Shown: positions 3,688-63,332 of the stretch, one piece after another | Position numbering within the stretch: position 1 is the first letter of the stretch | Layout: every line of letters starts with the position of its first letter | NCBI RefSeq assembly: GCF_006345805.1 | Contig: NC_043010.1 | Coordinates: 14,074,001-14,138,000 of the forward strand | DNA: 64,000 bases | Direction of reading: 5' to 3' | Source: Octopus sinensis | Lineage: Eukaryota | Translations under genes and position numbers: made by a program | The notes under the pieces: model-generated | The model's database searches: none | What the model saw: the letters and a program-made list of their open reading frames with translations, nothing else | What the model was told of the DNA's origin: nothing

Positions 3688-6600
3688 AAGTTTGGTACTT
3701 ATTCTGTAGGTCTCTTTTGTCGAACCACTAAGTTACGAAGACATCAATAAACCAACACTGGTTGTCAAGTAGTTGTGGTAGGCAATCACTTTACATCCAG
3801 TAAAAGTGGTTGGTATTTGGAAGGGTATAAAGCCATTAAACTCCATTCCAAAACAGACCTCACTGGTGCTGGTGCCACATAAAAAGCACCCACTCTGTAA
3901 AGTGGTTAGCATTAGGAAGGGCATCCAGCTGTAAAAATCATGCCAAAAGAGACCCCGTGCTGGTGCTGGTACCACATGCAAAACACCCAGTCCACTCTGT
4001 AAAGTGGTTGGCATTAGGAAGGGCATCCAGCAAATGAACCACACCTCACCAGTGCTGGTACCATGTAAAAAGCATCCAGTTCACTCTGCAAAGGGGTTGG
4101 AGCTAGGAAGGGCATCCGGCCATAAAAACTATGCCAAACAAACTTTGCAGGGGCTGCTGTCATGTAAAAAGCATTCAGTTTACTCTGTAAAAGTGTTTGG
4201 CATAAGGAAGGGCATCCAGCTGTAAAAACCACGACAAAACAGACATTGGAGCTTGGTGCAGTCCTCTGGCTTGCTACCTCCTGTCAAACCATCCAACTCA
4301 TGCCAGCATTGAAGATGGACATTAAATGATGATGATGGTGTACACGGATTCCTCACAGTTTCTGTCTAGCAAACTCACTCACAAGGCATTGGTTGGCCTG
4401 AAGCTGTTGTAACTATTACCCAAGGTGCCACACAGTAGGATTGAACTTGAAAATCATGTGCTCGCAACCCACGCTTTAACCACACAGCCATGTCTGAAAG
4501 GGAAAATGACAAATTGGTCATAATTGGAATGTCTTTAATCATAACCTGAGATGGGGCAAAACATCACCACTGGAGACTACTTGATTCCAACTTAGAACCT
4601 TCAGTTTCTTTATTTGGAACAAAGGGAAACAGCAAAGAATATGAAGAAAATAAAGTTTTCTTTCAATATTTCACCTTTTATCAAGGTCTAATTTTATACT
4701 GGTGCCCCAGCATGACCACAGTCTGGAATTCTTTCTTTTTGTTTATTTAGTTAATTGTTTATTCTATTTCATTGTATATGTATTTGTTTCTTTTCTTTTG
4801 TAATATTTTTTCATTTCTAATCAGTAAAAGATTCAGTAGTTTTCATTTTTCTTTTCCTATGTTATACTTTTATTCATTTAATCAATTTTACTTGAGGCTC
4901 AATATAATGTCCTTTGAGAGGTTTCAACAGTTTTCCATCTTATCCTGTACATTTCTGGCACCTATTTGAAATAGAAAAGTACTTGAGCAAACAAGAGGGA
5001 CTCAGCACAGATGACCGGCCAAATTCCTCTCACAATGAAAGAGAAAATATATTGGACAGTTCCCCAGATAATGCAGTTCTATATTTAAGAGATGAGGAGT
5101 TATGTACATTATTTACATTTGACGGATATTTGTCCTCATCTTAACCACTACACCATATGCCCATGGGCATATGGCCTGAATAATAATAACATCGAAAAAT
5201 ACCTTAGGAATGAGAACCTAGGTTCGAAATTTCCTCAAAACACCTGATGAAGGCTGGAGGGTATATCAGCCGAAATGTTGTGTTAACAACAAACAAGACG
5301 AGGACAAATATCTGTCAAATTGTTAAATCGAGTGAGGTCGTTGCCAGTGCCGCCTGACTGGCCCCATGCCAGTGACACGTAAAAGCACCCTCTACACTCT
5401 CGGAGTGGTTGGTGTTAGGAAGGGCATCCAGCTGTAGAAACTCTGCCAGATCAAGATTGAAGCCTGGTGCAGCCATCTGGTTCACCAGCATTCAGTCAAA
5501 ATCGTCCAACCCATGCTAGCATGGAAAGCGGACGTTAAACGATGATGATGATGATGATGAATGTGGTTCCCCAGATATATGAAAAAATAGGATGACCATA
5601 ACTGGATTGTTTTTGATCAGTGATCCACAAATCTTGGAATGACCTTGGATTCAACAACAACAACAACAACACTAAATGTATACTGGGAACGTAATGAAAT
5701 TGGAAAAGCGGCAAGGTGTACAAGTAATCATATAATAGAATGAACATTGGTCTTATGGAACTGTCTTACCTATTTCCCAGATAAATATGGTCTTAATTCT
5801 TGTAAACCAGTTTTGTGTTGATTGATTCATGATTCTTAGAGCAGCTCCTCATAAGATTTTTTTCTTCCTTACTTTCCTTTCTTTTGTAACTGACAACATA
5901 TTAAAATGGTTTCTTGGAGCCTGTTTTATTGCTGATGTCTTACTGCCTTATTGAGAGTGACTAAAAATAGTAACCCATCTTACTATAGGCACAAGATCTG
6001 AAATTTGGGGAATGGGGCTAGTTGATTATATTGACCCCAGTGTTTCACTGGTACTTAATTTATGGACCCCTGTGTTTCACTGGTACTTAATTTATGGACC
6101 ACAGGCGGTGAGCTGGCAGAAACGTTAGCACGCTGGCGAAATGCTTAGCAGTATTTCGTCTGCCGTTACATTCTGAGTTCAAATTCCGCCGAGGTCGACT
6201 TTGCCTTTCATCCTTTCGGGGTCGATAAATTAAGTACCAGTTATGTACCGTTTTTCGATATAATCGACTTATTCCATCTGTCTGTCCTTGTTTGTCTCCT
6301 CTGTGTTTAGCCTCTTGTGGGTAGTAACGAAATAGGTACTTAATTTAAGGACCCCAAAAGGATGAAAGGTAAAGTCAACCTCTTCAGCATTTGAACTCAG
6401 AACATAAAGACAAATGAGATGCCACTAAGCATTTTGCCTGGCATGCTAACAATTCTGCCAACTCACCACCCTCTTAATAACAACAACAACAATACTTTTT
6501 ACAATAGGCACAAGGCCTAAAATTTTAGGGTCAGTCAATTACATCAGCTCCAGTACTCAACTAGTAACCTTTTTTTTTATTGTCCCCATAACTTGGCAGT

Positions 6601-8753: not shown

Positions 8754-9598
8754 GTGAAAATTCACTCATGAAATATATATGTGCCAATAACATTATCATT
8801 TACCATCATCACTACCATTAGACAGATGTATTCTGATGCGATGCACTATAATGTAATTTTATGATTTCCTTTGCAGTTAAATGTTGACTTCTTAGCAAAC
8901 TTCAAGATAGCCCCTGTAGTAAAAGCTGACCAGCTTGTATCATACCGAACCTTTATGGGGTTTACTTGTCCTTGCTTCCCAGAAAGTCGGGTACGTATTC
9001 CTTTACCATATATTGTGGCAGTAGCATTCATACCTCTTTTATATATATATATGTATGTATAATAAATATTAGGGAATAAATCCAAATTTACAGGGAAAAA
9101 ATCAGATTTAGGATTAAATCCAATTTTATAGTAAAATATTATAAAATATTATTAGAGACAAAACCACTATTTTGCAAAACAAACAAGGAAAGACTTAATC
9201 AATACATAAAATTTTAATAAATAGTCAAAAAAACCGCCACTACAATCGTTTCTTGTCTTGATCGACAATCTTCAGGTGGACTTCCAATAATTCAGTGTCA
9301 CTGAATTATTGGAAGTCCACCTGAAGATTGTCGATCAAGACAAGAAACGATTGTAGTGGCGTTTTTTTTGACTATTTATTAAAATTTTATGTATTGATTA
9401 AGTCTTTCCTTGTTTGTTTTGCAAAATAGTGGTTTTGTCTCTAATAATATTTTATATGTATGTATATATATGTATATATGTGTGAGTATATATATGTGTA
9501 TGTATATATATATATGTATGTATATATATGTATATATGTGTGAGTATATATATGTGTATGTATATATATATATGTGTATAAATATGTACGTCTGTGTG

Positions 9599-9631
<33 letters not shown>

Positions 9632-12600
9632 CAAAGTGTTGGAATACTCCACAGCAGTGGTTCCCAAACTTTTTAGAGTCGCGACCCGCTATTTATCACA
9701 CCAGTTTATGACGACCCACTTATAAGTCTTGAACTATCTCGATAAACAGCAGTTAATCAAAGCTAATGCGTAATTTTATAACTTTTTGCAACCCACTAAG
9801 ATTCCGTTCGCGACCCATCTGTGGTTCGCGACTCATAGTTTGGGAACCACTGCTCCACAGCATATATATGCGTATTCATATACACAAGATATATTATAAA
9901 AATTTATAGATATATAAAAATACATAAATGTACTTGCGATGTATGAAATATATTGAGTGAATGAATGTGAACATTGACCTTTGAAATTTGTTCTCTCTTT
10001 CTTGGTTTTATATTCCTGAGGCTCTATCAGAGCGCTAATTAGTTATGCTGTGCATAAGGGGATAATTATCCCATTTATTTCTTCATTATATATATATGTA
10101 TATATATATATATACCCACACACACACATAGTTTACTGTTCTGTTAAGGTATGGCCAACAAAAAAAGTACTCCACCCATTAAGAGATAAATATCTTTTAA
10201 TGGAAAGTGTATAAAGATATGAGCTACTAATAGTTTCTTGCTTGGAGACATGGGCCTAGACAAGTTTTTATAACACAATAGTGTCTCCAAGCAATCTCCA
10301 AGCTTTGAGCACATAGTCTATTAAATTTGCAATAGCGATCATGTGCACAGAGCTCGAAGATTGCTTGGAGACTCAAGGTGTGTTATAAAAACCTGCCTAG
10401 ATTCACGTCTCCTAGCAAGGAACTATTAGTAGCTTGTATGTTTATAGTGTGTACATTAAATGATATATATATATATATACATCATCTCAAAAGAGTCCAG
10501 AAGCTGGCTACCCGCATAGTTCTTGGTCTCAAGCATTTGTCTTATGAAGAAAAGCTGAAGATGCTCGACCTTTATTCTCTCGCAAAACGACGATGCTGTG
10601 GTGATCTCATTCTTGCTCACAACATCATAAGCGGAAAGCATAACCTCTCGAAAGAGCTGTTCTTCACTCCTGCTCCAGAGCGTGGGCTGCGGGGTCACTC
10701 TGAAAAGCTCTATCTACAATGATTTCATCTCAATCGAAGGAGAGAGGCTGTCTCTGTCCGGGTTGCGGATCCATGGAATAAGCTGCCGGACGAGATAGTG
10801 AAGATGCCAACGACCGCTCGGTTCAAAGTCTCTCTTGACTGGAAATGGCCTGAACTCTTTGTATGACCATCCTCCCTGTACATAAAACTCCCTGTCCCCC
10901 TACATGGCCTTGCTTTTGCTTTTTGAGCCAATAGAAATTAAATTGAATTAAATAAATATATATATCCTGACCCAGGAAGGGACAATGTTACTGTTATTTT
11001 AGCCCCAAGAAATATTGTCCCTTCCAGGACAGCCACATTATGTTGCCAAATGGCCTTTACTTTAAAGAACTGTTACTGAATGTCTCTTTTTGAGAGATTT
11101 AGAAATAATATTTCTATATCCTGATATTTATAACTCTAAGACAATACATCTTATTTTTACCAGTATATTTGTTGGAAACTTTGGGAATCTACCATAGTAA
11201 CTTTAACCCTTTCGTTACCAACCCGGCTGGAACTGGCTCTGGCTCGGTAGTACAAATCTCTTGTTTTCATAAGTTTTGAATTAAAATCTTCTACCAAACC
11301 TTAGTCACAATTTATGTTCCTAACACTAGCTGAATGATAACTAAGTTATTTTATTAAACACTTTGTTATATTTAAAGTAATTGAAAGAAACACAGAGCAT
11401 CTCAAAATAAATACAGTAACGAAAGGGTTAATGCATATTATATACACACTTTATATACATAATGCACAATTTTATAGACTTAATAATACACAGCACACAT
11501 GAAATAAATATTCACTCTTATTTTTCCATTTTCCTCATAAACAAAAAATATCCTGTACATATGATACAGTCTTTAGTTAAATTGCATATATTTGTCCTGT
11601 AATTAAACGTAAAAATATTTCACAGAATTGCATTTATGTACATGTGTTAAGGGATAGGTGATATAAAAAAACCTAGTTCAGAGCATCTCAAAATAAATAC
11701 AGTAACGAAAGGGTTAAGAGCTGAGGAGAAAAGTTGTGGGTTAATTGTTCCATTAATTAACTGATTACTTATGCATACAAACCATTGTATAGTGGAGAAA
11801 CAGTTCTTGTAATAATTTGAAATGATCATACCATTGAATATATATGTAAAAACATAATGTTTGTCTTTTTGTCTGATTAATACATGTATGTGTGTGTATG
11901 CATAAGCACTTGATAAGAAGGTCGTGGGTTGGATTTTTCAACCGGGCAATGCATTGTGTCCTTGAGCAAGGCACTCCATTTCACATTGTTCTAGTCTTCT
12001 CATCTGAAGTGAATACTGGCTGAAATAAATACTAGCCAAGTGTTCGTTTCACATATGTATACTTGTAGATTCTGCTGGTGCCCATGGCAGAGCAGAGTGA
12101 GGGGTAACTTGATCAGAGTACCCCTGTATGAGAGGATATATGTCTGGTGAGGAGGCACAATGGAGGGCATTTAATTTTCCAGCAAAGTTTGATGAGTTCT
12201 TAGCTGCTTATCTTTTGTTACAACTAAAGAAAGGTGTGTGAGGGAGGGAGAGAAGAGAGAGAGAGAGAGAGAAAGGAATTGAGTTCTCTCAGTAACTTAG
12301 AATTTTCTGTCTTCTTTAGAAAAATATTACCTCAGAAAATAGTTTGATGAGTTCTTAGCTTTTGTTACAACTAAAGAAAGATGTGTGAGAGAGAGAGAGA
12401 AAGGAATTGAGTTCTCTCAGTAACTTTGAATTTTCTGTCTTCTTTAGAAAAATATTACCTCAGAAAATAGTTTGATGAGTTCTTAGCTTTTGTTACAACT
12501 AAAGAAAGATGTGTGAGAGAGAGAGAGAAAGGAATTGAGTTCTCTCAGTAACTTTGAATTTTCTGTCTTCTTTAGAAAAATATTACCTCAGAAAATATTT

Positions 12601-13008
12601 TACAAGACTCTCTGCAAAATGTCCTCAATATTCGATCTGAGCTGAGGTAAGTAGTTCCGTTTCCTTTACATTCTTGTTTTCCATTTGTGAAAAGGTAAGA
12701 TTGTTTTTATATTGACACCTGGGCAGCAGTGACATTAATTGTGTCCTGTGTAAACAAGATTTCTCGTACCTCAGCAATTTTGAAATGTCAAGCCTAGTAG
12801 AATGAAGTACCTTACTTTAAAAAAAAAAAAAGTTAGCAGGAGTGGCTGTGTGGTAAGTAGCTTGTTTACCAACCACATGGTTCCAGGTTCAGTCCCACTG
12901 CGTGACACCTTGGACAAGTGTCTTCTACTATAGCCTCGGGCTGACCAAAGCCTTGTGAGTGGATTTGGTAGATGGAAACTGAAAGAAGCCCGTCGTATAT
13001 ATGTATGT

Positions 13009-13044
<36 letters not shown>

Positions 13045-13864
13045 CTGTGTTTGTCCCCCTAGCATTGCTTGACAACTGATGCTGGTGTGTTTATGTCCCC
13101 GTAACTTAGCGGTTCGGCAAAACAGAGTGATAGAATAAGTACTGGGCTTACAAAGAATAAGTGCCAGGGTCGAGTTGCTCGATTAAAGGCGGTGCTCCAG
13201 CATGGCCGCAGTCAAATGACTGAAACAAGTAAAAGAGTAAAAGAGAGTATCTGGAAAAGTGTCCATCTATAGAATTCTATCTTCAGAAGACTCATCTAAC
13301 TCATGACAGCACAGAAAAAGCAGACGTAAAAATAATGATGATGTCGACAATGACGTTATGTAATTTATATTCTAAATCTTACTAAATTTAGCTGATTAAT
13401 TATTTGTCCACATATTCTGGTTTACATTGTTTCTCTCTGGCTCTGTCTCATGGATATTCCTTATTTCTGTTTCAGACATCCAAACAGATTTGAATTGCTA
13501 TTCCCATACCTGGCATATAGCTTGCAAAGGAAAAGCCCCTATGTCTACCCAGATTTGTCTCTATCGGTACTCATATCCAGCAGGTGAGTTCTTCTTATTT
13601 TTTACACACACACACACACAAAGGAGTAAATGATACCCATTTTTAAAATCTAGTTATCTAGTGTCTATTTTTTAAAAAGAATATGTTTATTGTCCTTCAT
13701 CCTTTTTATATGCTTATTTAGATCTCTGAGTTTGCTATATTTCATCAGTATTATATACAGCTTCACTGAGAGACCTCTTTGGCAAACTGCACCTGATAAT
13801 ATTTTCATTATTATTGAAAAATATTTATTTTACACCCATATGCACGTTTGTATATGTATATGTG

Positions 13865-13905
<41 letters not shown>

Positions 13906-15088
13906 ACAAATGCATGTGCATATATGAATATTTGTGTCCGCCATGATAGATCGTTAGCCACTACACACATTTTTTTCTCTCCTTGTTTTTTCTGTGTCCC
14001 TTTCTGTAGAAGAGCATAGGCTCGAAACGTAAAACACTTTTTCTATTCCTGAGCGTTATACTAATACATCTGTTTGTTTTGTACATCACCTGTCTTCATC
14101 TTCTGTTTTTTTTAGTAAACTCTCCCTATATATAAATACATATGCGTATATATATATATTTATGTATGTAAATATGTAATTATTGCAAATATTTTTCTCC
14201 AGAGTACAAGATGCCGTCCAGCAAAATGTGCAAAAGACAATTGAAAGTAAGTCTTGTTTTTGTTGTTTTTCAATTTTTTAATACTTCTTTTTATTCTCTT
14301 GTTCATGATGTCCAGCAAAAATGCTTTTGTGAGAGAAGAGAACGGTTGATAAATATTAAATGAATGTTAAATAAGGAAGGTAGTTGATGCTGCTTGTATT
14401 GAGGTGTTTTGGGGGAAATTTGTGTCCTTATTTTATTCTTTCTTGTAATAAGATTGTGATGCAAGGGTCCAAAGAAGCATCATCATCATCATCATCATTT
14501 TAACATCCACTTTTCCATGCTTGCATGGGTTGGACAGAGTTCATTGAAACAGCCTTTTCTCCGGTCGGATGCTCTTGTTGTTGCCAACCCTACCTGTTTC
14601 CAAGAAAGGTAATATTTTCCCGTGGCCAGATATGTTTTCACAGAATTACAACAATCAGTGTCCAGATAAGGTGATACAAATGTGCATGCATGCACAGATG
14701 TACACGCATGCGTGCATACATATATATCACTTTTTCGACTCCATGGGTGCACCTAAGAGGTTCCTTTCCAGCATACAAGTCTGGGCGGAAAATCGCCTCA
14801 CTGGTGAACACACAGCCTAGGGCTGTTTTTATGGAAGACAGCAGTCGCCCATGCATACCAGCCTCCTTTCTCCATGCCACCAATGTTATCCAACAGAAAG
14901 GCAAAGGGGATGATACAGCTCAGCACCAGTGACGTCGCAACTCATTTCTACAGCTGAGTGAACTGGAGCAACATGAAAATAAAGTGTCTTGCTCAAGAAC
15001 ACAACACTCAGTCCGGTTCAAGAATTGAACCCACAACCTTATGATCATAAGCTCAACGCTCTAACCACTGAGCCATGTACCTTCACTG

Positions 15089-15251: not shown

Positions 15252-18200
15252 AACCGGCTTCTTTTAGTTTCTGACTACTAAACCTATTCACAAGGCTTTA
15301 GTTGACCTGCCACTATTTTAGAAGTGACTTGCCCAAGATGCCACACAGTATGACTGAACCTGAAACCATGTGGAAGAGAAACTAACTTCTTGACTACACT
15401 GTCACACCTGCACTGAAGCTACAAATACCTGGAATTGGCAAAAATCAGTGTATGCATGAGTGATTATGCATTTTTTAAAATTTAATTAGTACTGAATAAA
15501 AATTGAGGCACTAGTGTGTACTTGTTAGTTCATCATGGTAAAAAGGAATGTTTTGCAAGGTTTGATGGAGAGAATTTGATAATTGAATGAAAATTAAATT
15601 GAATATGGACTACTTTGGATGTGGTTTTGTAGGTGAACCAAATGCTAAAATGGAAAAAATCCTGAAGATTGAAAAGCAGCGTTCCAAAAAGATCATTGAT
15701 CGAATGAAAGCCTGTATATCATACTGGTCAGTGAGGTGAGTATTTAGTTGTTTTTTTTTCCTCTAGTATTCAATCATTACCATAAAATACTTCAGTGTGA
15801 GCTATGTTGTTGTACTGCTTGTACATATGAGACGGTTTTGCTGCTACATCCAAATATCATACATCTGATTTCAAAAATGAAGCTTTCTCTTCAAGTCCAG
15901 AAAATACTATATTTAACCCATTATCATTTAAACCAGCCATATCCAGTCCAAATATGCTATCTGTTTTATGTTCTAACCAACCAGATCAAGCCTATCGCAC
16001 ATACCCTTCAGTGCTAATTTAAAAATATAGAATCACATCAGCAAAATTTTGAAGCTGGAAAATAATGCAGGATTAATTTAAACACAATGTGAATGAAAAG
16101 GCATTATGGAGGAATTACAACCGTGTTTCGTGGTCTGCTACCACAACAGCTCCTTTATAGGATCCAGTTAGCTCAAGACATCATCAGGAGGAACCATGTC
16201 CGGTTTCGGCCCCTACTCCTCTACTGTTTTGACGTGCCCCCCCCCCCTTTCGGAGGTTTCTTCAGCTCTGGTGTTGGGTGCATGTCTTCTTTCTTCTGTT
16301 CCCTGGCCTCTTCAATGTATTGTCAGCGAATGTCAGCCGGTGACTGACTGACTTGTCAAATTTTTCCCTTTAAATACCTGCCACAAGGCTCCAGCAGGCA
16401 GCCCCAGCAAGTTGTCACGTGACACTTCTCCCCTTAACTGACTAGTGAAGGTGCGTAGTCTTAACCCGTGCATTCTGTAAACGACCGTCACCTGTCAGTC
16501 AGCGAAGCTGATTCAGTGTCAGCTTGTCTAATAATCTGAATGATAAAGGGTTAAATATAAAATGCCCTTTTTTTTTTCCAGAATGTTTCAAAAAATTATC
16601 CTGGGTCCTATAAGCAAAGTTGCTTTTACCCTTTTGATACTAACCCACCTAAGACTGCCCCTGTTTCTATGATACAGACTTCCTGGTTTTTAAGCCTTTA
16701 GCATTCAGAATCCTTTGTCAAATGTAATGCTTATTTATTCACCTTGTTTTGAATTAATCCTGCTTTATCTTGTAGTATCGAGACTTCAATGGAGTGTTTG
16801 TATATTTTTAGAATGACATTGTAGGGTAGGTGTGAAAGGTTGTCTCTGGTCAGTTTTAACATAAAATAGGTAGAATATTTGGGCCAGATATGACTGGATT
16901 AAATGCTAAAGAGTGATGGTGATTTAAATTAAAACCTTTCATCAAAATTTCCCATAACTTTATGTTCCAAACACCAGCCTTGTAATGACAAAATTATTTT
17001 ACTGAATTCTTCCTTATTTTCAAAATTAACTGGAACAACAACAATAATCTCTCCTCCTTTCAGTATCCCTAGATCACCTAATCCTCACGCTCAGTAATTT
17101 CTTCAATCCCATGTGTTTACATGAGTTCAGACTTCAAGAATATCTTTCCTGGCTATGTTCTTCTAACAAACATCACTCCACAGAAATTCAAACTGGACCT
17201 GTCTCCAGTCTGAGAGGATGTTGCAAATGTCATGGATGCTGCTGCTTTACTTTACACTGTGTAACTGGGAACAGTCAGTATCTTAGTAATCCAGTGTTAA
17301 CTTCTGGTTAACCATCAGTTGATATCCGAGAAACCTGGTTAATCATCAGTCACTGTACCAGAAACTGTTTTAACCATCAGTCAATATTTTAGCAACCTGG
17401 TTAACCATCAATCAGTTTTCTAGTGACCTCTGGTTAACCATCAATCAGTATTCTAGTGACCTGATTAACCATCAATCAGTATTCTAGTGACCTCTGGTTA
17501 ACCATCAATCAGTATTCTAGTAACCTGGTTAACCATTAGTCAATATTCTAGTGACCTGGTTAACTATCAATCAATATTCTAGTGACCTCTGGTTAACCAT
17601 CAATCAGTATTCTAGTGACCTCTTGTTAACCATCAATCAGTATTCTAGTGACCTCTGGTTAACCATCAATCAGTATTCTAGTGACCTCTGGTTAACCATC
17701 AATCAGTATTCTAGTGACCTCTGGTTAACCATCAATCAGTATTCTAGTGACCTCTGGTTAACCATTAATCAGTATTCTAGTGACCTGGTTAACCATCAGT
17801 CAGTATTCTGGTTAACCAGCCATCAATAAGCTAACCTTGATAATCACTCAGTCTCCTAGCAACCTGGTTAATCATCAGTCAGTAATCCGTGTAATTCTAA
17901 TCTTTAGATTACTGTTGTCTAAAATTGCTTCTCCACTTTTCCTCTTGCAGCCTCTTTGGTTACTCCTTGTTCAAGTTCCTTGGGTTAATATTACGGAGCC
18001 TCCAGGTTCATCGGTCGCAGTTGAATATAATTAAAGATTTAGAGCAGGTAAGTGGGACATTACCACCGATGCTTAACTGAAAAAACCTGTGTATGTACCC
18101 TTGTTTTGTCATTATGTGATGGTAAATAAATCAGCATCACTGTCATAGCAGCAATATTCTTTGTTTCCAGTCTTCTTTGTAAAACATGTCTAACCATGGG

Positions 18201-21200
18201 AAATATTACCTTGCTTGGTAATTGGAAGGGGAACCGGCTGTAGAAAATCTACCTTGTGGACATTAAATGATAATGATATGTGTATGATATGCTTCCATAT
18301 GGTTTCTGTTTACCAAATTTTACTCAAGGCATTAACCCTTTCGTTACCAACCCAGCCAAAACCGGCTTTGGCTCTGTGGTAAAATGTCTTGTTTTCATGT
18401 TTTGTATTAATATCTTCCACCAAGCCTTAGTCACAATTTACGTTCCTAACACTAGCTGAATGATAACTAAGTTATTTTACTAAATTATTTGTTATATTTA
18501 AAATAATTGAAAGAAACACAGAGCATCTCAAAATAAATACAGTAACGAAAGGGTTAATCAACTTTAGGCTATAGTAGAAGACTGTTGCCCATCCAAGGTG
18601 CAACACAGATACTGAACCAGGGAACATATGGTTATAAAATGAACTTTCTAAACATGGTTTTTTGAGAAGCCAGGCTCTGTTTGACTGCTGCTGTATTTTG
18701 TTCAATAAGACTGTGGGTTCAAGTCTAACCATATGAATTTTCTCTGATATGAATGTAAGGTTACAATACAGCTTATTAAAATTTATTAAACCTTTACCCA
18801 CATCGTTGTACAGTAGCAGAATAATACTGTAGATAGATTAGGTGCTCGTGCCATGTAAAGAGCACCTGTACAGATGCTACATAAAACGCACCTGTGTTTG
18901 TGCCATGTAAAAAGCACCTTGTATAAGTCTGTAAAGTGGTTGGCATTAGGAAGGGGATCTAACCATGGAAACCATACCAAAACAGACAAATGGAATCTCC
19001 AACTTGCCAGCTCCTGTAAAAAGCACCCTGTATAAGTCCATAAAGTGGTTGGCATTAGGGAGGGGATCTAACCATGGAAACCATACCAAAACAGACAAAT
19101 GGAACCTCCAACTTGCCAGCTCCTGTAAAAAGCACCCTGTATAAGTCCATAAAGTGGTTGGCATTAGGGAGGGGATCTAACCATGGAAACCATACCAAAA
19201 CCGACAAATGGAACCTCCAACTTGCCAGCTCCTGTCCAACCCATGCCAGCATGGAAAACAGACATTAAATGGTGATGATGAGCATATGTCTTACATTTAG
19301 ATGCATAATTAACATTCTTTTTGACATAAAGTGAAAAATAATTGATAACAATTCTCAAAGTAGAAGAGGTGACAAGTGTAAAACTTGGCAGACACCCATA
19401 AAATTATTAACCATCTTACAAACAATAACTCTGAGCACCTTTTCAAACTCCACCTGTCTAACACACGTGGACATGTTTACAAAGTCAGTAAACAGCACAG
19501 CTCCCATGACTTTCGGAAACATTTTTTCACGCTAAGAGTTGCTGAAGCATGGAACAAACTGCCGGCATCAGTTGTTAGTTGTCGGAGCTCTGCATCCTTC
19601 AAAACTTCCATGCTTCCTGAGATTCGCCAACACTACACCTGATTTTCTCCCCTCCATACACACGCAAGCATGTATCTGACTCATACACTGTTCGCTTTCC
19701 AGACATTTGTACATTACTGCATATACTTTATACGCACTTTTGACAAGTTGTGGTGCACCTGAGCACTGTATACAATAATTTCATTATTATTATTATAAAA
19801 CAAGGACTATATTTTTCAGAGTTGTCTTCTAAAACTACACATTCAATACTACTTGTGTGGACTTTTACTATGTCTAAAGACTCAGGTATTTCAAACAAAA
19901 TATAATTTTAAGAGAAATTATATATTTCATGGTTACAACCATAAATTGAACAATCATCTTATAGTTTTCAAAATGATGGTGGAATTTCTATAGGTACTGC
20001 TTGTCATTGTTGTTATTATTTAACTTGCTTCAGGTTTGGTCTCATTCCTGATAGAATTTATGTGGTAGCAGGTTACTACCTGTATATTATTATTATTATT
20101 ATTATTATTATTTATTATTATCATCATCATCATTATTCATCATCATCATCATCATCATCATTTGACGTCCACTTTCCATGCTAGCATGGGTTGGACGATT
20201 TTGACTGAGGGCTGGCGAACCAGATGGCTGCACCAGGCTCCAATCTTGATTTGGCAGACTTTCTACAGCTGGATGCCCTTCCTAACGCCAACCACTCCAA
20301 GAGTGTAGTGGGTGCTTTTTATGTGCCACCGGCACGGGGGCCAATCAGGCGGTACTAGCGATGACCTCACTCGAATCTTTTTACACATGCCACCAGCACA
20401 GGTGCCAGTAAGGTGACGTTGGTAACAATGACGCTCGAATGGTGCCCTTTTACATGCCACCGGCACGGAAGCCAGTTGGCTACTCTGGCAATGATCACGC
20501 TCGGATGGTGGACCTCGCTATTATTATTATTGTTTTTTTTTATTTATTTTTTTATTTTTTTTTAAGGTGGCAAATCATTAGCATGCCAAGCAAAATGCTT
20601 AGAGGCATTTCATTCGCTTTTATGTCCTGGGTTTAAACTGCTGAGGTTGACTTTGCATTTCATCGTTTGGCTATTGATGATATAAGTCCTAGTTGAGTAC
20701 CAGGGATGCTGTAATTTACTAGACCCCCACCTCCCAACAAATTTCAGGCCTTGTGCCTATAGCAGAAAGTATTATATCATTATTAATTATCATTATCATT
20801 ATTATTTCTCTTGCAGAAAGGTCATCCCATAATCTTCTTACCTTTACATAAAAGCCATCTTGATTACATTATTGTCACTTGGATATTGTGGATTCATGAC
20901 ATGCGAGTGCCTTATGTAGCAGCAGGGGACAATCTGAACATCCCTATTATTGGGTTTGTAATATTTTCCTTTATATTCTCTCTTTTTACTCTTTTACTCT
21001 TTTACTTGTTTCAGTCATTTGACTGCAGCCATGCTGGAGCACCGCCTTTAGTCAAGCAACTCGACCCCGGGACTTATTCTTTGTAAGCCCAGTACTTATT
21101 CTATCGGACTCTTTTGCCGAACCGCTAAGTTACGGGGATGTAAACACACCAGCATCGGTGTTGGGGGGACAAACACAGACACACACACATATATACATAT

Positions 21201-24200
21201 ATACAACGGGCTTCTTTCAGTTTCCGTCTACCAAATCCACTCACAAGGCATTGGTCGACCCGGGGCTATAGCAGAAGACACTTGCCCAAGATGCCACGCA
21301 GTGGGACTGAACCCGGAACCATGTGGTTGGTTAGCAAGCTACTTACCACACAGCCATATTTTTTTCTCTATGATGCATCATGTATTCCTTAACGACACAA
21401 CAGATTGTAACGGCTTGTTTTCTAATGACACATCAAGATCTAACAACAGGGGTCTCAAACTCAGGACACACAGATTGGCCATTACATTTTGGCGCAGGGC
21501 ACTGAGGCAAAAATGAGATGAGTTGGGGAGTGATTTCTACCAACTATGATACTAAACGGCAATGCAGCTGATAGGCTACTGTTTATTTATCTTTCTCTTA
21601 ACAATGTTTACATCTTCCTCGGATCTTTTCGGTTTGAACGGCAGTTTTTTCTAGCGGTGTCATATGAAATTGTCACCCATAATTATGACCCTAGTATCAA
21701 TTGCATTTCAATCTGTTTTAGGATTAGGGTTAGGGGTGGTGAGAAGGGTATCTTTTTTTCTTCACAAATGTAAATAAACCCAATCTGTTTCGTAAACGAG
21801 GGACATATTCATATGGCACAGAATGTTTTATACCTCAATAGACGTCATTGATTGGTTGAAATTGCAGAAATTGAAGAAAAAGAACAACAAATATCTTACA
21901 AACCATAGAATTTTCTCAATAAAGCCAAGAGAAAAAGATGTTTCCATTCGTCTCATTCTTTGTTACCTGCCCGTTTAAACAGTTCCTTACTTTGCGTTTC
22001 AGGCCAATATTAAGGGCTTTGGGAGGATTCTTCATCCGAAGACGGTTAGACACAAATGGCAAAAGAGATCTCATCTACCGATCAGTGTTACAGTCAGTAA
22101 GTAAAAGTTTCCTTGTCTCTGATTTGAAAGCCTAACTTTGAATTCGGACCCTTGGTAATTTCAGCTACTAGTACATAAAAGTCATTGGTTTCAAATGCTG
22201 GTAATGTTTGAACATACTTATTTCTTTATTACCCACAAGGGGCTAAACATAGAGGGGACAAACAAGGACAGACAAACAGATTAAGTCGATTACATCGACC
22301 CCAGTACGTAACTGGTACTTAATTTATCGACCTCGAAAGAAGATGAAAGGCAAAGTCGACCTAGGCGGAATTTGAACTCAGAACGTAACGGCAGACGAAA
22401 TACCTATTTCTTTATTACCTACAAGGGGCTAAACATAGAGGGGACAAACAAGGACAAACATGGGTATTAAGTCGATTACATCGACCCCAGTGCATAACTG
22501 GTACTTAATTTATCGACCCCGAAAGGATGAAAGGCAAAGTCGACCTCGGTGGAATTTGAACTCACAACGTAACGACAGACGAAATACGGCTACGCATTTC
22601 GCCTGGCGTGCTAACGTTTCTGCCAGCTCACCGTTTGTTTGAACATACTGCCATGCAATGCAGTCAAACCTAATACTATATGAAAGGTGTGTATATGTGT
22701 GCATGTGCATATAATTTCCCTCTTTGCCTTTTTGCCTTTTGGATCTCATTTTTCTATTTTATCTATATTTAGTACATGCAAGAACTTCTCCAGGAAGGCC
22801 AGTCTTTGGAATTCTTTATAGAAGGAGGAAGGAGTCGAAGTGGCAAAGCTCTCTACCCAAAAGGTGGTCTGTTGTCAGTTATTGTTGATTCATTTCTTCA
22901 AAGTGAGTATACATTGCTTTGTGAAGGGGTTTTTTGTTTTCACATTTTGGTCAAACATTCTTATCTCTTGCCCACAGTTCTTTTGGCTTCTCCCTATACT
23001 ACGACTATTACCTTTGTCCACTCAGATGCTCTTTACACACTCATCTAGCTTCCTCACACCGCCACTATTGTGTCCAAACCCCAGGACCCACATTAATCTC
23101 TAGGCCCAGTTCTTTCTGTACAAGATGTCAGCCCTTTAGACTTTTCCTCGATGCACATGTCTTTCTTGAAGCCAACTTCCAACAATTTAAGCGAAACATT
23201 AACCCTTTTAATGCCAACCTGCCTGATGCAGTCCCTGGTTCTTTGATACAAACTTCCTGTTTAACCCTTTCGTTACCAACCTGGCTGGAACCGGCTCTGG
23301 CTCTGTAGTACAAATCTCTTGTTTTCATAAGTTTTGAATTAAAATCTTCCACTAAACATTAGTCACAATTTATGTTCCTAACACTAGCTGAATGATAATT
23401 AAGTTATTTTACTAAATTCTTTGTTATATTTAAAGTAATTTAAAGAAACACAGAGCATTTCAAAATATATACACTAACGAAAGGGTTAAAGCCATCTAAA
23501 TTAAAACCTCTGATTGAAAGCTTGTGTTAATTTGTTCCAAACACCAGCTGAATAATGACAAAGTTATTTCACTAAATTCATCATTATTTTCAAACCTATT
23601 TGATACAAAAGCAGTGTAATTTGATAGAAATAATGGTAACAAAAGGGTTAATAGCAACGAGTCTTAGCAGCCTTGGAGGATCTTCACAGCCATGGGCACA
23701 GTCTTTTCACTCATACCATCATCATCATCATCATTGTTTAGCGTCCGCTTTCCATGCTAGCATGGGTTGGACGGTTCAACTGGGGTCTGGGAAGACAGAA
23801 GGCTGCACCAGGCCCAGTCAGATCTGGCAAAGTTTCTACGGCTGGATGCCCTTCCTAACGCCAACCACTCCGTGAGTGTAGTGGGTGCTTTTTACGTGCC
23901 ACCGGCACAGGTACCAGTCGAGGCTGGCAAACAGCCACGATCGGATGGTGCTTTTTATGTGCTACCAGCACTGGGGGCCAGGCGAGGCTGGCAACGGCCA
24001 CGATCGGATGGTGCTTTTTACGTGCTACCAGCACTGGGGGCCAGGCGAGGCTAGCAACGGCCACGATCAGATGGTGCTTTTTACGTGCTACTGGCACTGG
24101 GGGCCAGGCGAGGCTGACAACGGCAACGATCGGATGGTACTTTTTACGTGCTACCGGCACTGGGGGCCAGGCGAGGCTGGCAAACGGCCACGATCGGATG

Positions 24201-27200
24201 GTGCTTTTTACATGCCACCGGCACAGGTGCCAGACGAGGCTGGCAACAGCCACGATCGGATGGTGCTTTTTACGTGCTACCAGCACTGGGGGCCAGGCGA
24301 GGCTAGCAACGGCCATGATCAGATGGTGCTTTTTACGTGCTACTAGCACTGGGGGCCAGGCATGGCTGGCAAATGGCCACGATCGGATGGTGCTTTTTAC
24401 GTGCTACCGGCACAGGTGCCAGACAAGGCTGGCAAACGGCCACAATCGGATGGTGCTTTTTACGTGCTACCGGCACTGGGGGCCAGGCGAGGCTGGCAAA
24501 TGGCCACGATCGGGTGGTGCTTTTTACGTGCCACCAAGAGAAATATGAACTTGATCTGGTGATATCTTGTAGTGTTGTTTCTGCAACTGTGCACGTATGC
24601 ATACGTACACACACACACTATTATCATGCTTAATAGTTGTTTTTTTTCTCCTTATTAAAGGTATCATGTAACACCGTAAATGTAAGTGGCGATATTACAG
24701 CCTAACTTTCTGCTTTAGTTGAATTGTAACTGATGCCAAAGTAGAGGTGTAAGTTAGCTCATATTTTTTTGACATGGATGGTCAATACAGGTGGTGGATT
24801 GTCATCTCTATATATATAAATGGCAAAATTTCTGCGTGTGTGTCCTTTATACAAATCCACAATTTTTCAGTTAGAGGGCTCGCACTTTCTATGGTCATTC
24901 AAAACCGTTCATGGGTGGTCGTGCACATCTTTACATTTCCCCAGTCACCCTGCAAAGCCATTAAAACATCAATAGAAGTGACTTTTTTTGTGAATTTTCT
25001 ATCCAAAACCCAATCAAAATGCCCGAAACTTGATATGCCAATTGAATGCCATCTAGCTGTATGTGATTGGCCGGAGATTTGGACAGTACTCGTATGTGTG
25101 TGCACACACACGCAGCTGTATATGCATGCACTAGCATTATGTCCCGGCGTTGCCAGGTCATAGTGTTAGTAATTATTAAATCATCAAGAGAAAGAGCAGC
25201 ATCTGAGATGAGAGCCAGTGGTATTAATAATAATGAAATTATTGTATACAGTGCTCAGGTGCACCACAACTTGTCAGAGTATATGCAGTAATGTACAAAT
25301 GTCTGGAAAGCGAACAATGTATGAGTCAGATACATGCTAGTGTGTGTATGGAGGGGAGAAAATCAGGTGTAGTGTTGGCAAATCTCAGAAAGCATGGAAG
25401 TTTTGATGGATGCAGTGCTCCGACAACTAACAACTGAATTCGGGAGTTTCTTCCATGCTTCAGCAACTCTCAGCGTGAAAAAATGTTTCTTGAAGTTATG
25501 GGAGCTGTGCTGTTTTCTGACTTTGTAAATATGTCCACGGGTGTTGTTATGGCCTTTTACACTTTGATTACAAATTCCTCTGAAGTCGACTTACACTCTG
25601 ATTTTCCCATGACCAAACTTTCTAATGTTAGATTTTCTTTATCACACACACATGCACACAAAAACAATAATAATTTATATCTATTTTTTTCATCCCTGTT
25701 TTCAGGTTGCATACAAGATGCCTATATTGTACCCATCAGTATCAGTTATGAGAAGTTGATGGAGGGTAATTTTATTGATGAACAAATGGTAAGGTCACAT
25801 TTGGATTTTAACTATGAGTGGTTTTGTTAATTTTTTTGTTTATTAGCACTGGGTCAGTCTTGATCTAGCTGACCCTGTTTCTGTTCTTCACAACACTGTG
25901 AACCCTTTAACTCTTTAGCATTTAATCTGTCCATATCCAACCCAAATATTGGTTTCTCTGGAAAACCAGAGCACATTGTGTTATATGCAGCCACCATGCT
26001 GGACACCAATGATGACTCTTGAATAAGTGATGGCTGTAGTTATTGCTATTGTTGTTGTTGTTGTTGTTACATTTGCCATAACCCTTTCCCACTTGCTCCG
26101 CTGAACTTGCTAAGATGCTTACTACCAACAACAGTATTATGGCTTTATTATATTCCATCTCAATCCCTGCTCTTACCATTCGTTCCGTCCTCTCATCCCA
26201 GAACATCATCCCTCTAGAATTCCCTTCCCAACCTATTTTGGCAAAGTCGACCTCGGCGGAATTTTGAACTCAGAACATAGCGGCAGACGAAATACCTATT
26301 TCTTTACTACCCACAAGGGGCTAAACACAGAGGGGACAAACAAGGACAGACAAACGGATTAAGTCGATTATATCGACCCCAGTGCGTAACTGGTACTTAA
26401 TTTATCGACCCCGAAAGGATGAAAGGCAAAGTCGACCTCAGCAGAATTTGAACTCAGAACAAAACAGCAGACGAAATACGGCTACGCATTTCGCCCGGTG
26501 TGCTAACGGTTCTGCCAGCTTGCCGCTTTCTTACCATTAGTTCCATCTGCCAGCTCACCCTGCTCTTACCATTAATTCCATCCTCTCCTCCCAGAACATC
26601 ATCCCTCCAGAATTCCCTTCCCAACCGTCCAACCCATGCCAATATGGAAAACAGGCATTAATTGATTATGATGATGTTCTACATTCTTTTTTTTATATTC
26701 AAACTGACAAAATCCAGTCTCTCTGACATCCCCTTAAAGTCATACTAAAAATAAGCAATCTTGAAGATACAAGGTAATACAGGATTAATTCAAACCAATG
26801 TGAATAAATAAGGATTACAATTGACAGAGTAATCTGAGTGCTAAAGGATTAAGTACTCAAGACACATTTCATGTTTCCAGTTGTTACAAGATAGCTTGGG
26901 AACAGAAATCAGACTCCAAGGGTTTCCAAAGAAAATAAAAAAGAAACAATCATTTTTATTCTAGTGTAAGAGTTATACCTTATACTGGCATAAAATCTAT
27001 ATATATATATATAAACGGCCAAATGTCTGTGTGTGTGTCCCGTATACAAATCCACAATTTCTCAGTTAGAGGGCTCGCACTTTCTATGGTCATTCAAAAC
27101 CGTCCAAGGATGGTCGTGCACATCTTTACATTTCCCTAGTCACCCCGCAAAGCCATTAAAAAAGCAATAGAAGTGACTTTTTCATGAATTTTCTATCCAA

Positions 27201-29640: not shown

Positions 29641-32600
29641 TAGCAGTATCGCCCGGCGTTGCTCGGGTTTGTAAGGGAAATAACTATATAAGCATTTTTA
29701 GAGAGTTACTTCCCTTATTTAAACCGAGCAAAAAATGCATTAAAAATGCGAAAAAAATTATGGTAAATTTTTTTATAATCATAGACTCATCGTAGACACG
29801 TGCTAATACCCAGAAGGGCTCGATATGAATCACGACTATAAGATACCTGCTTTTGGTTAAACTGCACCGCAAAATGTGGGAGTGGTTAGGAATCTAAATC
29901 GGAGGAGACAGACTCTCACACACACAACTTCAGTTTTATATATAAAGATACACGTACATACATGCATATGTGTGTGTGGTGTATATGTATATATATATAT
30001 ATATATACATGTATATAAATAATGCATAATTGTGTGCATAAATAAGTTGTTTTTTTTCTTGTTTTTCCGCAGGTTCTGTATGTAGTACCGTACTGATGAG
30101 TACCAACATCTTGGCATTTTTGCTTTTAACAAAATACCGCCAGGTAAGCAACCAATCACTTCTTATAATCAGGGGAATTACTACAAGGTTACCTCAGCTG
30201 GTAGAAATAGCAGCTAAATATTCCTCACCTCAAACTTCACTGTCTTTAACATAAAAAGGACACATTAGATTTAGTAGTCTAGCTACCTAAAAAAAAGTCA
30301 ATGCTTTTGGTGTCTTGATTTGCTAAATCAGAGCTAATTTTAAGTTAAAGATCCACTATTATTTATAATACTGCCATTGTTGACTTCTTTTGATTTTACA
30401 ATTCAATGTTTTTTTACTGTTTTGTATGTATGCAAACATACATTTTGATCTTGCTCTGAAAATTGTTTCAAGGTCAATCAGAACAATAGCTTAAGAACAA
30501 TACTATTGAAATTACAAGTTTTCTTAGATGTTAATTAAAGGAGATTCTGTTGTGTCTGGGGAGAGTCATTCTCTTTTAGTGCCTTACTAGCAGTATCACC
30601 CGGCGTTGCTCGGGTTTGTAAGGGAAATAACTATAAAGCATTTTTAGAGAGTTATAGCCAAAAAATAGAAAAAAAATGGGGGGGAAAATGATGGTAAATT
30701 TTTTTTGAGAGTTAAAAAGGTCGAGTTGCGTCCCTTAGACAGTCTGTGGTTTGTGTTTCTGATTCTCGACCCCATGTCGAATTTATCGATTTTTTTCAGA
30801 ACTGGGGGAACTTTTCAAAATTTTCGCTGCGTTAGTTTTGAATTATGACATTGGGCTATGTGTGTGTCAAGTTTCATCAGAATCGGTTGAAAGCCGTGGT
30901 GAGGGTGAGGGTACGAGAAAACAGACACACATATAGAGAGAGATTATTTAACACACTCACCGGTAAAATTTCCACTTATTTCTTATTTTCATTTTCCTAA
31001 AATTTTCGTTGCGTCTTTCAACCTTTTTCAATAGTCTTGACTCTGTCCGTTATTTACACTGCATTCCCTTTTGTTTGTTTGTGCGCATGTGTGTGGGTCA
31101 GTGTGTGTGTGTGTGTGTGCCTATACATGCATGCATGTACGTATGTATGTGTGTGTGTTTGCATGTGTATGTATGTATATATGTGTGTGTATGCATGTGT
31201 ATGTATGTATGTGTGTGTGTTTGCATGTGTATGTATATATGTGTGTGTATGCATATGTATGTATGTATATGTGTGTGTATGCATCTGTACGTACGTATCC
31301 TGCATATTTATGTGCTTGCCTGTCCGTGTTTGTGTATTTTCTATGTGTGTGTGTGTGTGTGTAAGCATGTGTTTGTATATGCATGCACCTCTGTCTCCTT
31401 GTGTGTGCATGTCTGTGTGTGTGTGTGTGTGTGTTTTTTTTTTTTTTTAGAAAATAAAAAATAAGCAATAAGTGGAAATTTTGCCGGTGAGTGTGTTAAA
31501 TAATAAGGCACTAAAAGAGAATGACCCTCCCCCCGACACAACAGAATATGCTTCAACACGCAAACTCATATAAAGAATCTTGCAAACCAAATCCAAAACG
31601 AAATTAAAGGAGAGTTACTCTTTTTACTCTTTTACTTGTTTCAGTCATTTGACTGCGGCCATGCTGGAGCACCGCCTTTAGTCGAGCAAATCGACCCCGG
31701 GACTTATTCTTTTGTAAGCCCAGTACTTATTCTATCGGTCTCTTTTGCCGAACCGCTAAGTGACGGGGACGTAAACACACCAGCATCGGTTGTCAAGCAA
31801 TGCTAGGGGGACAAACACAGACACACAAACATATACACACACACTTATATATATATATATATATACACATATATACGACAGGCTTCTTTCAGTTTCCGTC
31901 TACCAAATCCACTCACATGGCATTGGTCGGCCCTGGGCTATAGCAGAAGACACTTGCCCAAGTTGCCACGCAGTGGGACTGAACCCGGAATCATGTGGTT
32001 GGTTAGCAAGCTACTTACCACACAGCCACTCCTGCGCCTGACTGTTATTTCAAGCAGGTCAACCGATCAATTAAAGGCATTCTATTGTTGCTTTGTTGCT
32101 GTGGAAACAGCAATCGGGCAGAATTATTAGTGCATCCGATAAAATGCTTAGTTTCATTTCTTGTAGCTCTTTTTATGTTCTGTGTCCAAATTCTGCTGAA
32201 GTCAGTTTTGCTTTTCTTTCTTTTGAAGTTAATAAAATAAGGTACTAGTCAAATACCGTTGTCAATGTAATCAACTTATCCCCACTTTTCCTAAAATTGC
32301 TAGCCTTGTGCCAAAATTTTAAACCATTATTGCTTTATTGCTGTTCCTGTTACTGATTTGTCTGTGTGTCTTACTACAGGGTGCCACTTTGAAAGAGCTA
32401 GCAGACAGCTTCAAAGAGCTGACTGACCTTGTGAAGAGCCGGAACCGAGATATTGGTTTCTCTGGAAAATCAGAAGACATTGTGCTATACGCAGCCGCTA
32501 TGCTGGGCAGCAATGTCCTGAAAAGGTAAATGACGACTCTTGAATGACTAATCTGCAGCTGTAGCTTTGGCTGCTGTTGTTATACTTACCATTGCTTTCA

Positions 32601-33662
32601 CCCTTTCCTACTTGCTTTTCTATGTTATCCCCTTGTGAGAACAATATAATTAACATTATTGTGCAGGTGGCACGTAAAAAGCACCATTTGGATGTGACCA
32701 TTGCCAGTTCCACCAAACTGGCCCTCGTGCTGGTGGCACATAAAAGCACCCACTACACTCTCAGAGTGGTTGGCGTTAGGAAGGGCATCCAGCTATAGAA
32801 ACTCTGCCAGATCAGATTGGAGTCTGGTTCTCCAGACCTCAGTCAAATCGTCCAACCCATGCTAGCATGGAAAGCGGACGTTAAATGATGATGATGATGG
32901 CATCACTTTCACCATCAATAGCAATTTAATTTATTGCTATTTTATACGAACACAATGGAAAACAGTCGTCATCAACATCATCTTCATAATCTTAATCATA
33001 TTCCTCGTCATCCACCACACCACGCTCCAGCACACTACACCTTACTGCATGTTGGTATAGGTTGGTAAAAGCTGCAATACAGCTCACTGGAAGATTTAGT
33101 TCACATCGTTATCAGTAATGTGAACTAGATTTTCTGAAAATGTCACCTACAACGTACACAAACATCCTGTCTTGGTGCCAAGAGCTAAATAGTAGCTCTG
33201 AAGAGTTTCTGATGGGAGGATGGTCATGGAAAATGCGATGAGTGCGTTGAGATATATCATCATCATCATCATCATAATCGTTTAACGTCCGTTTTCCAAG
33301 CTGGCATGGGACAGACTGTGTGACTGGGTCCAGTAAGCGGCACCAAGTTCCGGTTGTCTGTTTTGGCTTGGCTTCTACAGCTGGACGCCCTTCCTAATAT
33401 CAACCACTTTACAGAGTGTACTGGGTGTTTTTTTACATGTCACCTACACAAGGCGGTGAGCTGGCAGAATCATTAGGACACTGGACGAAATGCATTGCAG
33501 TATTTCGCCTGTCGCTATGTTCTGAGTTCAAATTCCACCAAGGTCGACTTTGCTTTTCATTTTTTCGAGGATTAAGCGCCAGTGAAACACTGGGGTTAGT
33601 TTAATCGACTCATCTCGTCCTTCAAAATGGCTGCCCTTGTAGCAAAATTTAAAACCATTATT

Positions 33663-62067: not shown

Positions 62068-63332
62068 CAGGGGTTGGACAAAATAATGGAAACACCTTAG
62101 AATTTCAAACAAATTTATTTTAATGATAATGATGATGATGATGATGATGGGGTAGGACCACCTTTCGCAGTAAGTACAGCTTGAATTCTATGAGGTATAG
62201 ATTCGTACAGTTTGAATTGTTTCCAAAGGAATTTTTGTCTTCAGCTAAAACAGTCTCCAGTTCTTGTAGTGATGATGGTGGAGGATATCAACTCCTTACT
62301 TGTTTTTCTAAAATGCACCATAAATGTTCAATAATATTGAGATCTGGGGACTGTGGTGGCCAGATACGATGTTCAACATCACTAGAATGTTCCTCATGCC
62401 ATTCAGTAACAACTTTAGCTGTGTGAATTGGTGCATTATCATCCTGAAAGATTGCATTTCCCTCTGGATACAGTTCCTCAACCATAGGATGAATTTGATC
62501 AGATAAAATGCTTAAATAGTCTTGACTATTAATTCTTCCATGAAGGGAAACCATTAGGCCAGCGGATTTCCAAGATATAGCCTCCCAGAATCACATTTCC
62601 TTCTCCATGTTTAACAGTTGGAAGAAGGCAGTCTGGGTCAAATGCTTCTTTTGACTGTCTCCACACATATACTCTGTCAGTGGTCAGAAATAAGGTAAAG
62701 GAAGACTCCTCCAAGAAAATAACATTTTTCTACTGCTCTGGGGACCAATTCTGAAGGTTTTTACTCCACTCTAATTGCTTTGCAACGTTTGCTTTTGAAA
62801 GTAGTGGTTTTCTGATTGCTTTGTGCAGCTCCTGGTAAACAGTTTTTGTGGAAACTGGGTTCTCGAAGTGGTCGTTAAGGTCTGCAATAATTTTGGGAGT
62901 TGTACTTTTGTGATCCTTTCTAACAATTTGCGTAAGAGTCTGACAGTCCCTATCTGAAAGTTTTGGTTTTCTTCTGGAGTTTTGTTTCAACAAGAATGTT
63001 TTTCCCTCTTTCTTAAAGGCTGTCATTACTTTCGAGACAGTACGTCTTGATACACCAAACATTTTGGCTGTTTTCATTACGCTAGCACCTGCCATACGAG
63101 CACCAACAATTTGACCTCTTTGAAAGTCCGATAGAGCTGTCATCTTAATGAATTTTAATTACCTTTTTCTGATGATATCTGAAAACAAACAGCAATTTTA
63201 GCAAAACATATTAAGCAACAATAATAATAAATCAAAAAACATAAAAATAAACAAGCTTTTGACGGTTTTATAGATATTTCAAAATTATGATGCTATGATG
63301 CTAGGTGTTTCCATTATTTTGTCCAACCCCTG
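62068..63332 (-). mobile_element. Tc1-like DNA transposon copy 2, decayed transposase (ATG 63143), DD36E spacing
   Basis: Perfect 30-bp TIRs CAGGGGTTGGACAAAATAATGGAAACACCT, TA TSD; paired-like [22 protein letters not shown]..., [25 protein letters not shown]; several frameshifts. Confidence 0.93.

Follow-up and report, generated by a model that had tools for sequence, protein, structure and literature searches.

What becomes of a gene when the acceptor of one of its exons is present three times over? The question is raised by a 64,000-nucleotide stretch of the Octopus sinensis genome (NCBI RefSeq assembly GCF_006345805.1, contig NC_043010.1, positions 14,074,001 to 14,138,000 of the forward strand; hereinafter the window, whose own numbering is used throughout), in which the 3' splice site of the third coding exon of a gene for mitochondrial glycerol-3-phosphate acyltransferase (GPAT1) lies within a tandem array. 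An earlier note on this DNA had proposed that the array may be either a rheostat, in which splicing to an upstream acceptor copy commits the transcript to nonsense-mediated decay (NMD), or a recent hypomorphic allele. The evidence below leans, by a modest measure, towards a plainer reading: an ordinary, tolerated, lineage-specific tandem duplication whose upstream acceptors are largely ignored and whose effect is neutral to mildly hypomorphic, not an evolved regulator.

The array was located with Tandem Repeats Finder at 12259-12601, with a period of 128, 2.7 copies and 99% matches. Direct dissection of the sequence resolves three head-to-tail direct units at 12186-12597, all on the + strand and without spacer, which are joined at 12341/12342 and 12469/12470. 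Specifically, copy 1 (12186-12341) is 156 bp long, and copy 2 (12342-12469) and copy 3 (12470-12597) are 128 bp each, confirming the tandem triplication that had been noticed earlier. Copies 2 and 3 are identical at 128 of 128 positions, and an exact repeat of 128 bp is far above chance expectation. Copy 1 has diverged from them by two substitutions (G12234 versus A12381 and A12509; A12299 versus T12427 and T12555) and by two indels, one of 8 bp and one of 19 bp within a GA-rich tract. This tract, at 12243-12281 in copy 1 and thus upstream of all acceptors, is 19 nt longer than in copies 2 and 3 (12387-12406 in copy 2); its shortening at a position that is exonic with respect to the upstream acceptors may be a plain microsatellite change or the reduction of a purine-rich enhancer.

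Each unit combines an intron's 3' end with the opening 22 nt of a coding exon that is 71 nt long, and ends in ...cagtaacttTgaattttctgtcttctttAG/AAAAATATTACCTCAGAAAATA (here and below, a slash marks a splice junction or a join). The acceptor AGs end at 12319, 12447 and 12575, as had been reported, and each is followed by 22 exon-like nucleotides; the shared exon start was put at 21 nt before, and its actual length is seven codons plus 1 nt. The acceptor 23-mer, gaattttctgtcttctttag/AAA, is the same in all three copies, and every copy carries a complete acceptor module, namely a branch-like GTAAC at -24, a tract of 75-80% pyrimidines and TAG/A. In copy 1, the putative branch site is at 12292-12296, the AG at 12318-12319 and the exon-like stretch at 12320-12341. 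The A12299 substitution creates an extra AG (12299-12300) 4-5 nt past the putative branch A, in this copy only. In copy 2, the AG is at 12446-12447 and the exon-like stretch at 12448-12469. In copy 3, the AG (12574-12575) is the productive acceptor, and the last 22 nt of the unit are the real exon start.

By sequence comparison, the host is a mollusc-type GPAT1 gene on the + strand at 178-46525, with 22 coding exons in the window. A human GPAM sequence, taken as a lead only, placed the conserved exons of the acyltransferase at about 20.8-36 kb, on the + strand. The host protein matches the human GPAT1 structure 8e4y (E=1.1e-57) and the Pfam families PF01553 (E=2.9e-23) and PF19277 (GPAT_C; E=1.1e-9), and the HX4D motif of the acyltransferase domain and the sequence IVPISISY are seen in the exon translations. 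An exhaustive representative search returned full-length relatives labelled by their sources as 'glycerol-3-phosphate acyltransferase 1, mitochondrial-like', from Aplysia, Ylistrum, Liolophura, Lingula, Watersipora and Priapulus. The gene identity suggested by the earlier note is thus borne out by structure, domains and named relatives. The closest relative, P0042, comes from a related species and is 76% identical in the core. Its source is a 3045-nt Logan contig of run SRR27666064 with an open reading frame (ORF) of 882 codons, and because the ORF nearly fills the contig, the contig is an assembled mRNA. Guided by P0042, we mapped 22 coding exons, separated by 21 GT-AG introns, to the interval from about 178 to 46525. 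The repeat-bearing exon had been called exon 3, which is correct for the third coding exon in the window, with 5' untranslated exons possible upstream of the window.

The 71-nt exon (12576-12646, +) starts in phase 0, comprises 23 codons plus 2 nt, and ends at a donor GT at 12647-12648. It has a single open frame, with stops in the other two. It is flanked by a 3585-nt intron, upstream of which lies the coding exon 8877-8990 (+; donor CGG/GTACGT), and by an 829-nt intron that separates it from the coding exon 13476-13583 (+). After copy 3, the exon runs on to the donor GAG/GTAAGT, whereas after copies 1 and 2 the next unit starts instead. Entry at 12320 or 12448 leads to an in-frame TAG after 12 codons, at 12356-12358 in copy 2 for the frame of acceptor 1 and at 12484-12486 in copy 3 for the frame of acceptor 2. 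Since 128 is not divisible by three, upstream entry also shifts the frame, and inclusions of 22 nt, 61 or 63 nt, and 128 nt bring a stop or a frameshift in every case. Frame reading therefore agrees with the earlier claim that the two upstream copies lead to a premature in-frame TAG and that only the distal copy is productive.

The relative's mRNA defines the junction that a functional transcript uses. P0042 reads ...CPCFPQSR/RDITSENLSHDTLQNVLDVKSELR/NVNRLEE..., and the window protein reads ...CPCFPESR up to 8990, continues through 12576-12646 plus 1 nt, and goes on as HPNRFELL from 13476. Protein and nucleotide alignments show the two to be collinear over both junctions with no insertion, which places the end of the upstream exon at 8990, as had been proposed, and identifies 8990/12576 as the productive join. 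Productive mRNA thus requires splicing from 8990 to the distal acceptor at 12576. Human GPAM has about 50 extra residues at the corresponding place, so that an exon might seem to be lacking between 8990 and 12576. This is ruled out by the P0042 mRNA, which fuses CFPQSR straight to RDITSEN.

We scored splice sites with weight matrices built from the gene's own junctions (21 introns) by leave-one-out scoring. The repeat acceptor is weak: its 23-mer, at 1.3 bits, ranks third from the bottom among the gene's 21 acceptors, whose mean is 8.7 bits (sd 4.2). The donor of the 71-nt exon, at 11.9 bits, is the second strongest of 21 and, when every GT of the window is ranked, falls at the 99.9th percentile. 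This strong donor stands 71 nt away only from the distal acceptor; acceptors 2 and 1 would need exons of 199 and 327 nt, respectively, that contain further acceptor modules.

A donor of their own is what the upstream acceptors lack. Copy 1 contains a donor-like site, AAG/GTGTGT (GT at 12234-12235, +), which scores 9.6 bits and exceeds the real-donor mean of 8.3 bits but is upstream of all acceptors. In copies 2 and 3, the motif follows acceptors 1 and 2 at a distance of 61 nt and reads AAG/ATGTGT, with an A in place of the +1 G (A12381 in copy 2). Had the AAG/GT motif been intact there, it would define a 61-nt, stop-containing exon that resembles the real 71-nt exon. The best remaining GTs between the acceptors are TCA/GTAACT, at the branch-like site (3.9 bits), TGT/GTGAGA (2.0 bits) and GAT/GTGTGA (1.5 bits), and no donor in the score range of authentic sites was found between the acceptors. 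Since copies 2 and 3 have lost the donor-like motif, no exon partner is left for the upstream acceptors. One of only two substitutions in the array therefore removes the element that would make the upstream acceptors efficient, an outcome with a chance of about 3%, calculated post hoc.

A likely course of splicing can be proposed from these features. In human data, flanking introns longer than about 250 nt go with recognition by exon definition, under which splicing prefers smaller exons and, among competing sites, those with the least distance across the exon (PMC9225289). The introns beside the 71-nt exon, at 3585 and 829 nt, are well above about 250 nt, so that this exon would be recognised by exon definition. 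The distal acceptor, the sole one paired with a strong short-range donor, should then be dominant. The upstream acceptors would be mostly silent pseudo-acceptors within the intron, and occasional leakage to them would give premature-stop transcripts that are probably removed by NMD.

Several observations weigh against this proposal. The upstream acceptors are identical in sequence to the productive one and could pair with the donor after 12646, giving exons of 199 or 327 nt, both of permissible size. At 65-85 nt past acceptors 1 and 2 there is a purine-rich (GA)n tract; tracts of this kind can be splicing enhancers, and this one is a candidate enhancer for these two acceptors. The weight matrices are built on only 20 sites, and either state of the G/A difference in the donor-like motif may be the ancestral one. 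Competing 3' splice sites at least 20 nt apart show an overall preference for the upstream site, which exon-definition architecture only lessens, and these data are human, not molluscan (PMC9225289). Acceptor usage is here wholly inferred.

Some of these observations speak for the hypomorphic allele that the earlier note offered as one of its two explanations. Under this explanation, the three acceptors truly compete, a large fraction of the pre-mRNA is spliced to 12320 or 12448, and the GPAT1 output of the haplotype is substantially reduced, with the diverted transcripts either degraded or translated into a truncated N-terminal peptide (about 137 residues, if translation starts at the candidate codon at 178). 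The identical 23-mers, the identity of copies 2 and 3 over 128 bp including the branch region, the human preference for upstream sites and the GA-rich tract downstream of the upstream acceptors are all consistent with it. However, the upstream acceptors have no donor partner and exon definition favours the distal site, and the divergence of copy 1 (two substitutions and two indels) points to a persistent two-acceptor state, which is easier to understand if it was nearly neutral. A recent and possibly hypomorphic allele is compatible with the data and close to the best explanation, in which the effect is neutral to mild; a substantial loss of output is unlikely, although it deserves to be taken seriously.

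The divergence of copy 1 also carries the history of the array. Because copies 2 and 3 are identical and copy 1 is different, at least two events are required. In a first step, about 128-156 bp across the 3' splice site of the 71-nt exon would have been duplicated to give two copies. These copies would then have diverged by two substitutions in 128 aligned sites (about 1.6%) and two indels. In a second step, the derived unit would have been duplicated again, or an unequal exchange near the 3' end of the unit would have produced the identical copies 2 and 3. Changes accumulated between the steps, so that the two-acceptor state persisted for a while; this is more readily understood of a state that was tolerated. 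Judged by the identity of copies 2 and 3, the array looks young. The likely cause would be replication slippage or unequal exchange, in a region rich in such arrays.

Indeed, at least six other tandem arrays with units of at least 60 bp were counted in the 64-kb window, and other arrays there have comparable units of 96-97% identity. Among the arrays of the window are those at 626-1099 (112 bp x 4.2), 3803-4031 (102 bp x 2.3), 17304-17809 (33 bp x 15), 18906-19235 (109 bp x 3.0), 23884-24535 (63 bp x 10.3) and 56122-56251 (63 bp x 2.1). The arrays at 3803 and 18906 have the motif AAAGTGGTTGGCATTAGG... in common, a hint that both represent a transposon-internal satellite. With 21 acceptors in about 46 kb and segments of about 140 bp, the chance that a random duplication contains an acceptor is about 6%, and with five or six arrays in the gene span we estimate about 0.3-0.4 acceptor-spanning arrays per gene of this size in the absence of selection.

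The gene contains a second internal duplicate that spans an exon boundary. The 3' half of exon 15 and about 90 bp of the downstream intron (32443-32616) are matched by 25939-26097, in the intron after exon 11, with 71% DNA identity over 176 bp and a protein-level match at 25906-26010. The donor region is deleted in this duplicate, which looks like the dead pseudo-exon of an older internal duplication. Together with the frequent arrays, it indicates that internal duplication across exon boundaries is recurrent and ordinary at this locus.

The repeat unit itself is local. It has no match elsewhere in the 64-kb window except trivial (GA)n, which argues for a local duplication of unique intron and exon sequence and leads us to reject an origin as a transposon-borne satellite. 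Dispersed repeats flank the repeat-bearing exon on both sides (11918-12010 and from 12836) without overlapping the array. The left one is an older repeat with six copies of 73-77% identity; the right one, from 12836-12900 onward, is a SINE-like element, perhaps of an octopus type, that follows an A-run and has at least eight more copies in the window with 91-98% identity, for example at 37816, 38609, 48850, 55590 and 61384.

RNA-based explanations were considered as well. A search of both strands with Rfam (permissive thresholds) and ARAGORN gave no RNA family or tRNA in or near the array; sub-threshold 'miRNA' rows correspond to TA/TG microsatellites at 12982-13055 and 13832-13926, far under the gathering scores, and were discarded. 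An RNA structure that favours one acceptor was rejected, as the minimum free energy over 501 nt (-120.1 kcal/mol) is close to the mean of shuffled sequences (-123.5; z=+0.57).

The array could also be a product of genome assembly, with one or two real units and an extra identical copy, or copies, introduced from a mis-assembled tandem or low-complexity stretch. The perfect identity of copies 2 and 3, the (GA)n microsatellite within the unit and the dispersed repeats on either side are what such an error would give, and no independent sequence of the locus came from the look-ups or the DNA scan. Specifically, exact-ORF look-ups and a protein search with the N-terminal exons returned no match, which bears only on the presence of the species in the collections searched, and an acceptor 30-mer had no match in a scan of metagenome DNA, which bears only on the collections searched; a word-indexed protein search with the core exons (cut-off 1e-20) gave a best match of 58% identity. 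Against an artefact, copy 1 is diverged, so that a real duplication junction (GAAAAT/AGTTTG) is called for by any state of two or more copies, the region has no Ns or irregularities, and similar arrays with units of 96-97% identity occur elsewhere in the window. Moreover, an assembly error in tandem repeats is more likely to merge copies than to create extra ones. We regard an artefact as rather improbable.

A more elaborate reading takes the array as a segregating copy-number variant, in which the number of units sets the fraction of GPAT1 pre-mRNA that goes to NMD, and takes the G-to-A change (12381/12509) as compensatory and selected, the change having disabled a near-perfect 61-nt decoy exon to which the first duplication gave rise. 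If true, the array and the G-to-A change together would let one see how selection repaired a splice-site duplication. This is a long shot.

The weakest case is that of an evolved rheostat or decoy, in which the upstream acceptors are kept to tune GPAT1 by regulated switching to NMD-targeted splicing, with unit number setting the dynamic range, or, in the decoy variant, sequester U2AF/U2 and cause intron retention: although poison-exon and decoy-exon regulation is established in other genes, either upstream acceptor leads to a premature stop well upstream of later exon junctions and the acceptors are intact in all copies, we consider it very improbable, because the array gives no sign of conservation, the near-total sameness of its last two copies suggesting a recent origin, such arrays are common and mostly neutral here, with roughly 0.3-0.4 acceptor-spanning ones per gene of this size expected by chance, neither an RNA structure nor a known RNA motif was found in or near the array, and the substitution removes the donor of an efficient poison exon, the opposite of a selected cassette. 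The earlier proposal of a poison-splicing rheostat is accordingly unsupported, the array looking young, its like abundant and its upstream copies poorly defined as exons.

Comparison with known systems places the array in the class of 3' splice-site duplications: it is head-to-tail, contains the intron signals and the exon start, and is of local origin. The general class of internal gene duplication was described by Gao & Lynch 2009, as cited in PMC4974935. The closest parallel is the potato RdRp gene PGSC0003DMG402000361, in which a tandem duplication comprises the 3' portion of an intron with the 5' portion of the following exon, and splicing at a cryptic donor within the exonic part of the duplicate gives new coding sequence and a new intron (PMC4974935). 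As in the potato gene, the branch site, the pyrimidine tract and the 3' splice site are intact in each copy of the GPAT1 array. Unlike the potato gene, the array has three copies instead of two, an exonic piece of 22 nt and no donor in the range of real sites between the acceptors, and inclusion brings a stop and a frameshift. Without a donor and with stops, the array makes no new intron or exon; a new-intron or mini-exon model was rejected on these grounds, and the functional donor that intron gain by tandem duplication (the Rogers model) calls for is absent.

Poison exons, for example those of SR-protein genes, are classic cassettes that are deeply conserved and regulated. The GPAT1 array resembles them in that the alternative choice brings a premature stop and yields a candidate NMD transcript, but it looks young, and a competent cassette with both acceptor and donor is lacking.

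In NAGNAG or tandem-acceptor wobble, a common branch point and pyrimidine tract serve acceptors spaced 3-12 nt apart, the choice is made at the second catalytic step, and the outcome is usually a subtle in-frame change (PMC2699507, PMC2668829). Repeated acceptor AGs compete for one upstream donor in the GPAT1 array as well, but at a spacing of 128 nt and with a separate branch and pyrimidine module for every acceptor, and the upstream choice brings a premature stop; spacing and separate modules thus exclude the array from this class. The array also resembles the 3' splice sites of equal strength in ALTssDB, which, like those of GPAT1, are at least 20 nt apart and adjoin introns of more than 250 nt (PMC9225289). 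If splicing in the array, too, prefers the sites with the shortest distance across the exon, the distal copy is predicted to be used; this preference is a statistical rule for human transcripts, whereas the GPAT1 competitors are exact duplicates in an invertebrate. A phrase search of the literature for duplicated acceptors in disease genes gave nothing usable.

Elsewhere in the gene, two junctions stand out. The donor of the first coding exon is ambiguous (434-446): ACC/GTTAAT (434) best fits the protein of the relative, while AAT/GTGAGT (440) has the better consensus. The two sites are 6 nt apart and in frame, and are possibly an alternative tandem-donor pair. For the exon that ends in ...NIPIIG (20953), the best frame-keeping donor, TGG/GTTTGT, scores 0.3 bits against the gene mean of 8.3, so that this donor is either unusually weak or the junction is mis-assigned by a few bases. 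Three ORFs in the window resemble, by eye, parts of mobile elements: 10336-10719 (+), in the intron upstream of the array, resembles the C-terminal end of a retrotransposon-type reverse transcriptase, and 42111-42479 (-) and 62532-63158 (-) resemble fragments of Tc1/mariner-type transposases.

No new mechanism is revealed by the array. For gene prediction it is a trap, as a predictor that chooses an upstream copy will return a truncated GPAT1 model. Provided that the array is real, 3' splice-site choice in a mollusc can be studied in it as in a natural experiment, with three identical acceptors that differ only in their distance from the donor and a candidate compensatory change in addition. 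The array illustrates how internal duplications across exon boundaries arise and how they are tolerated.

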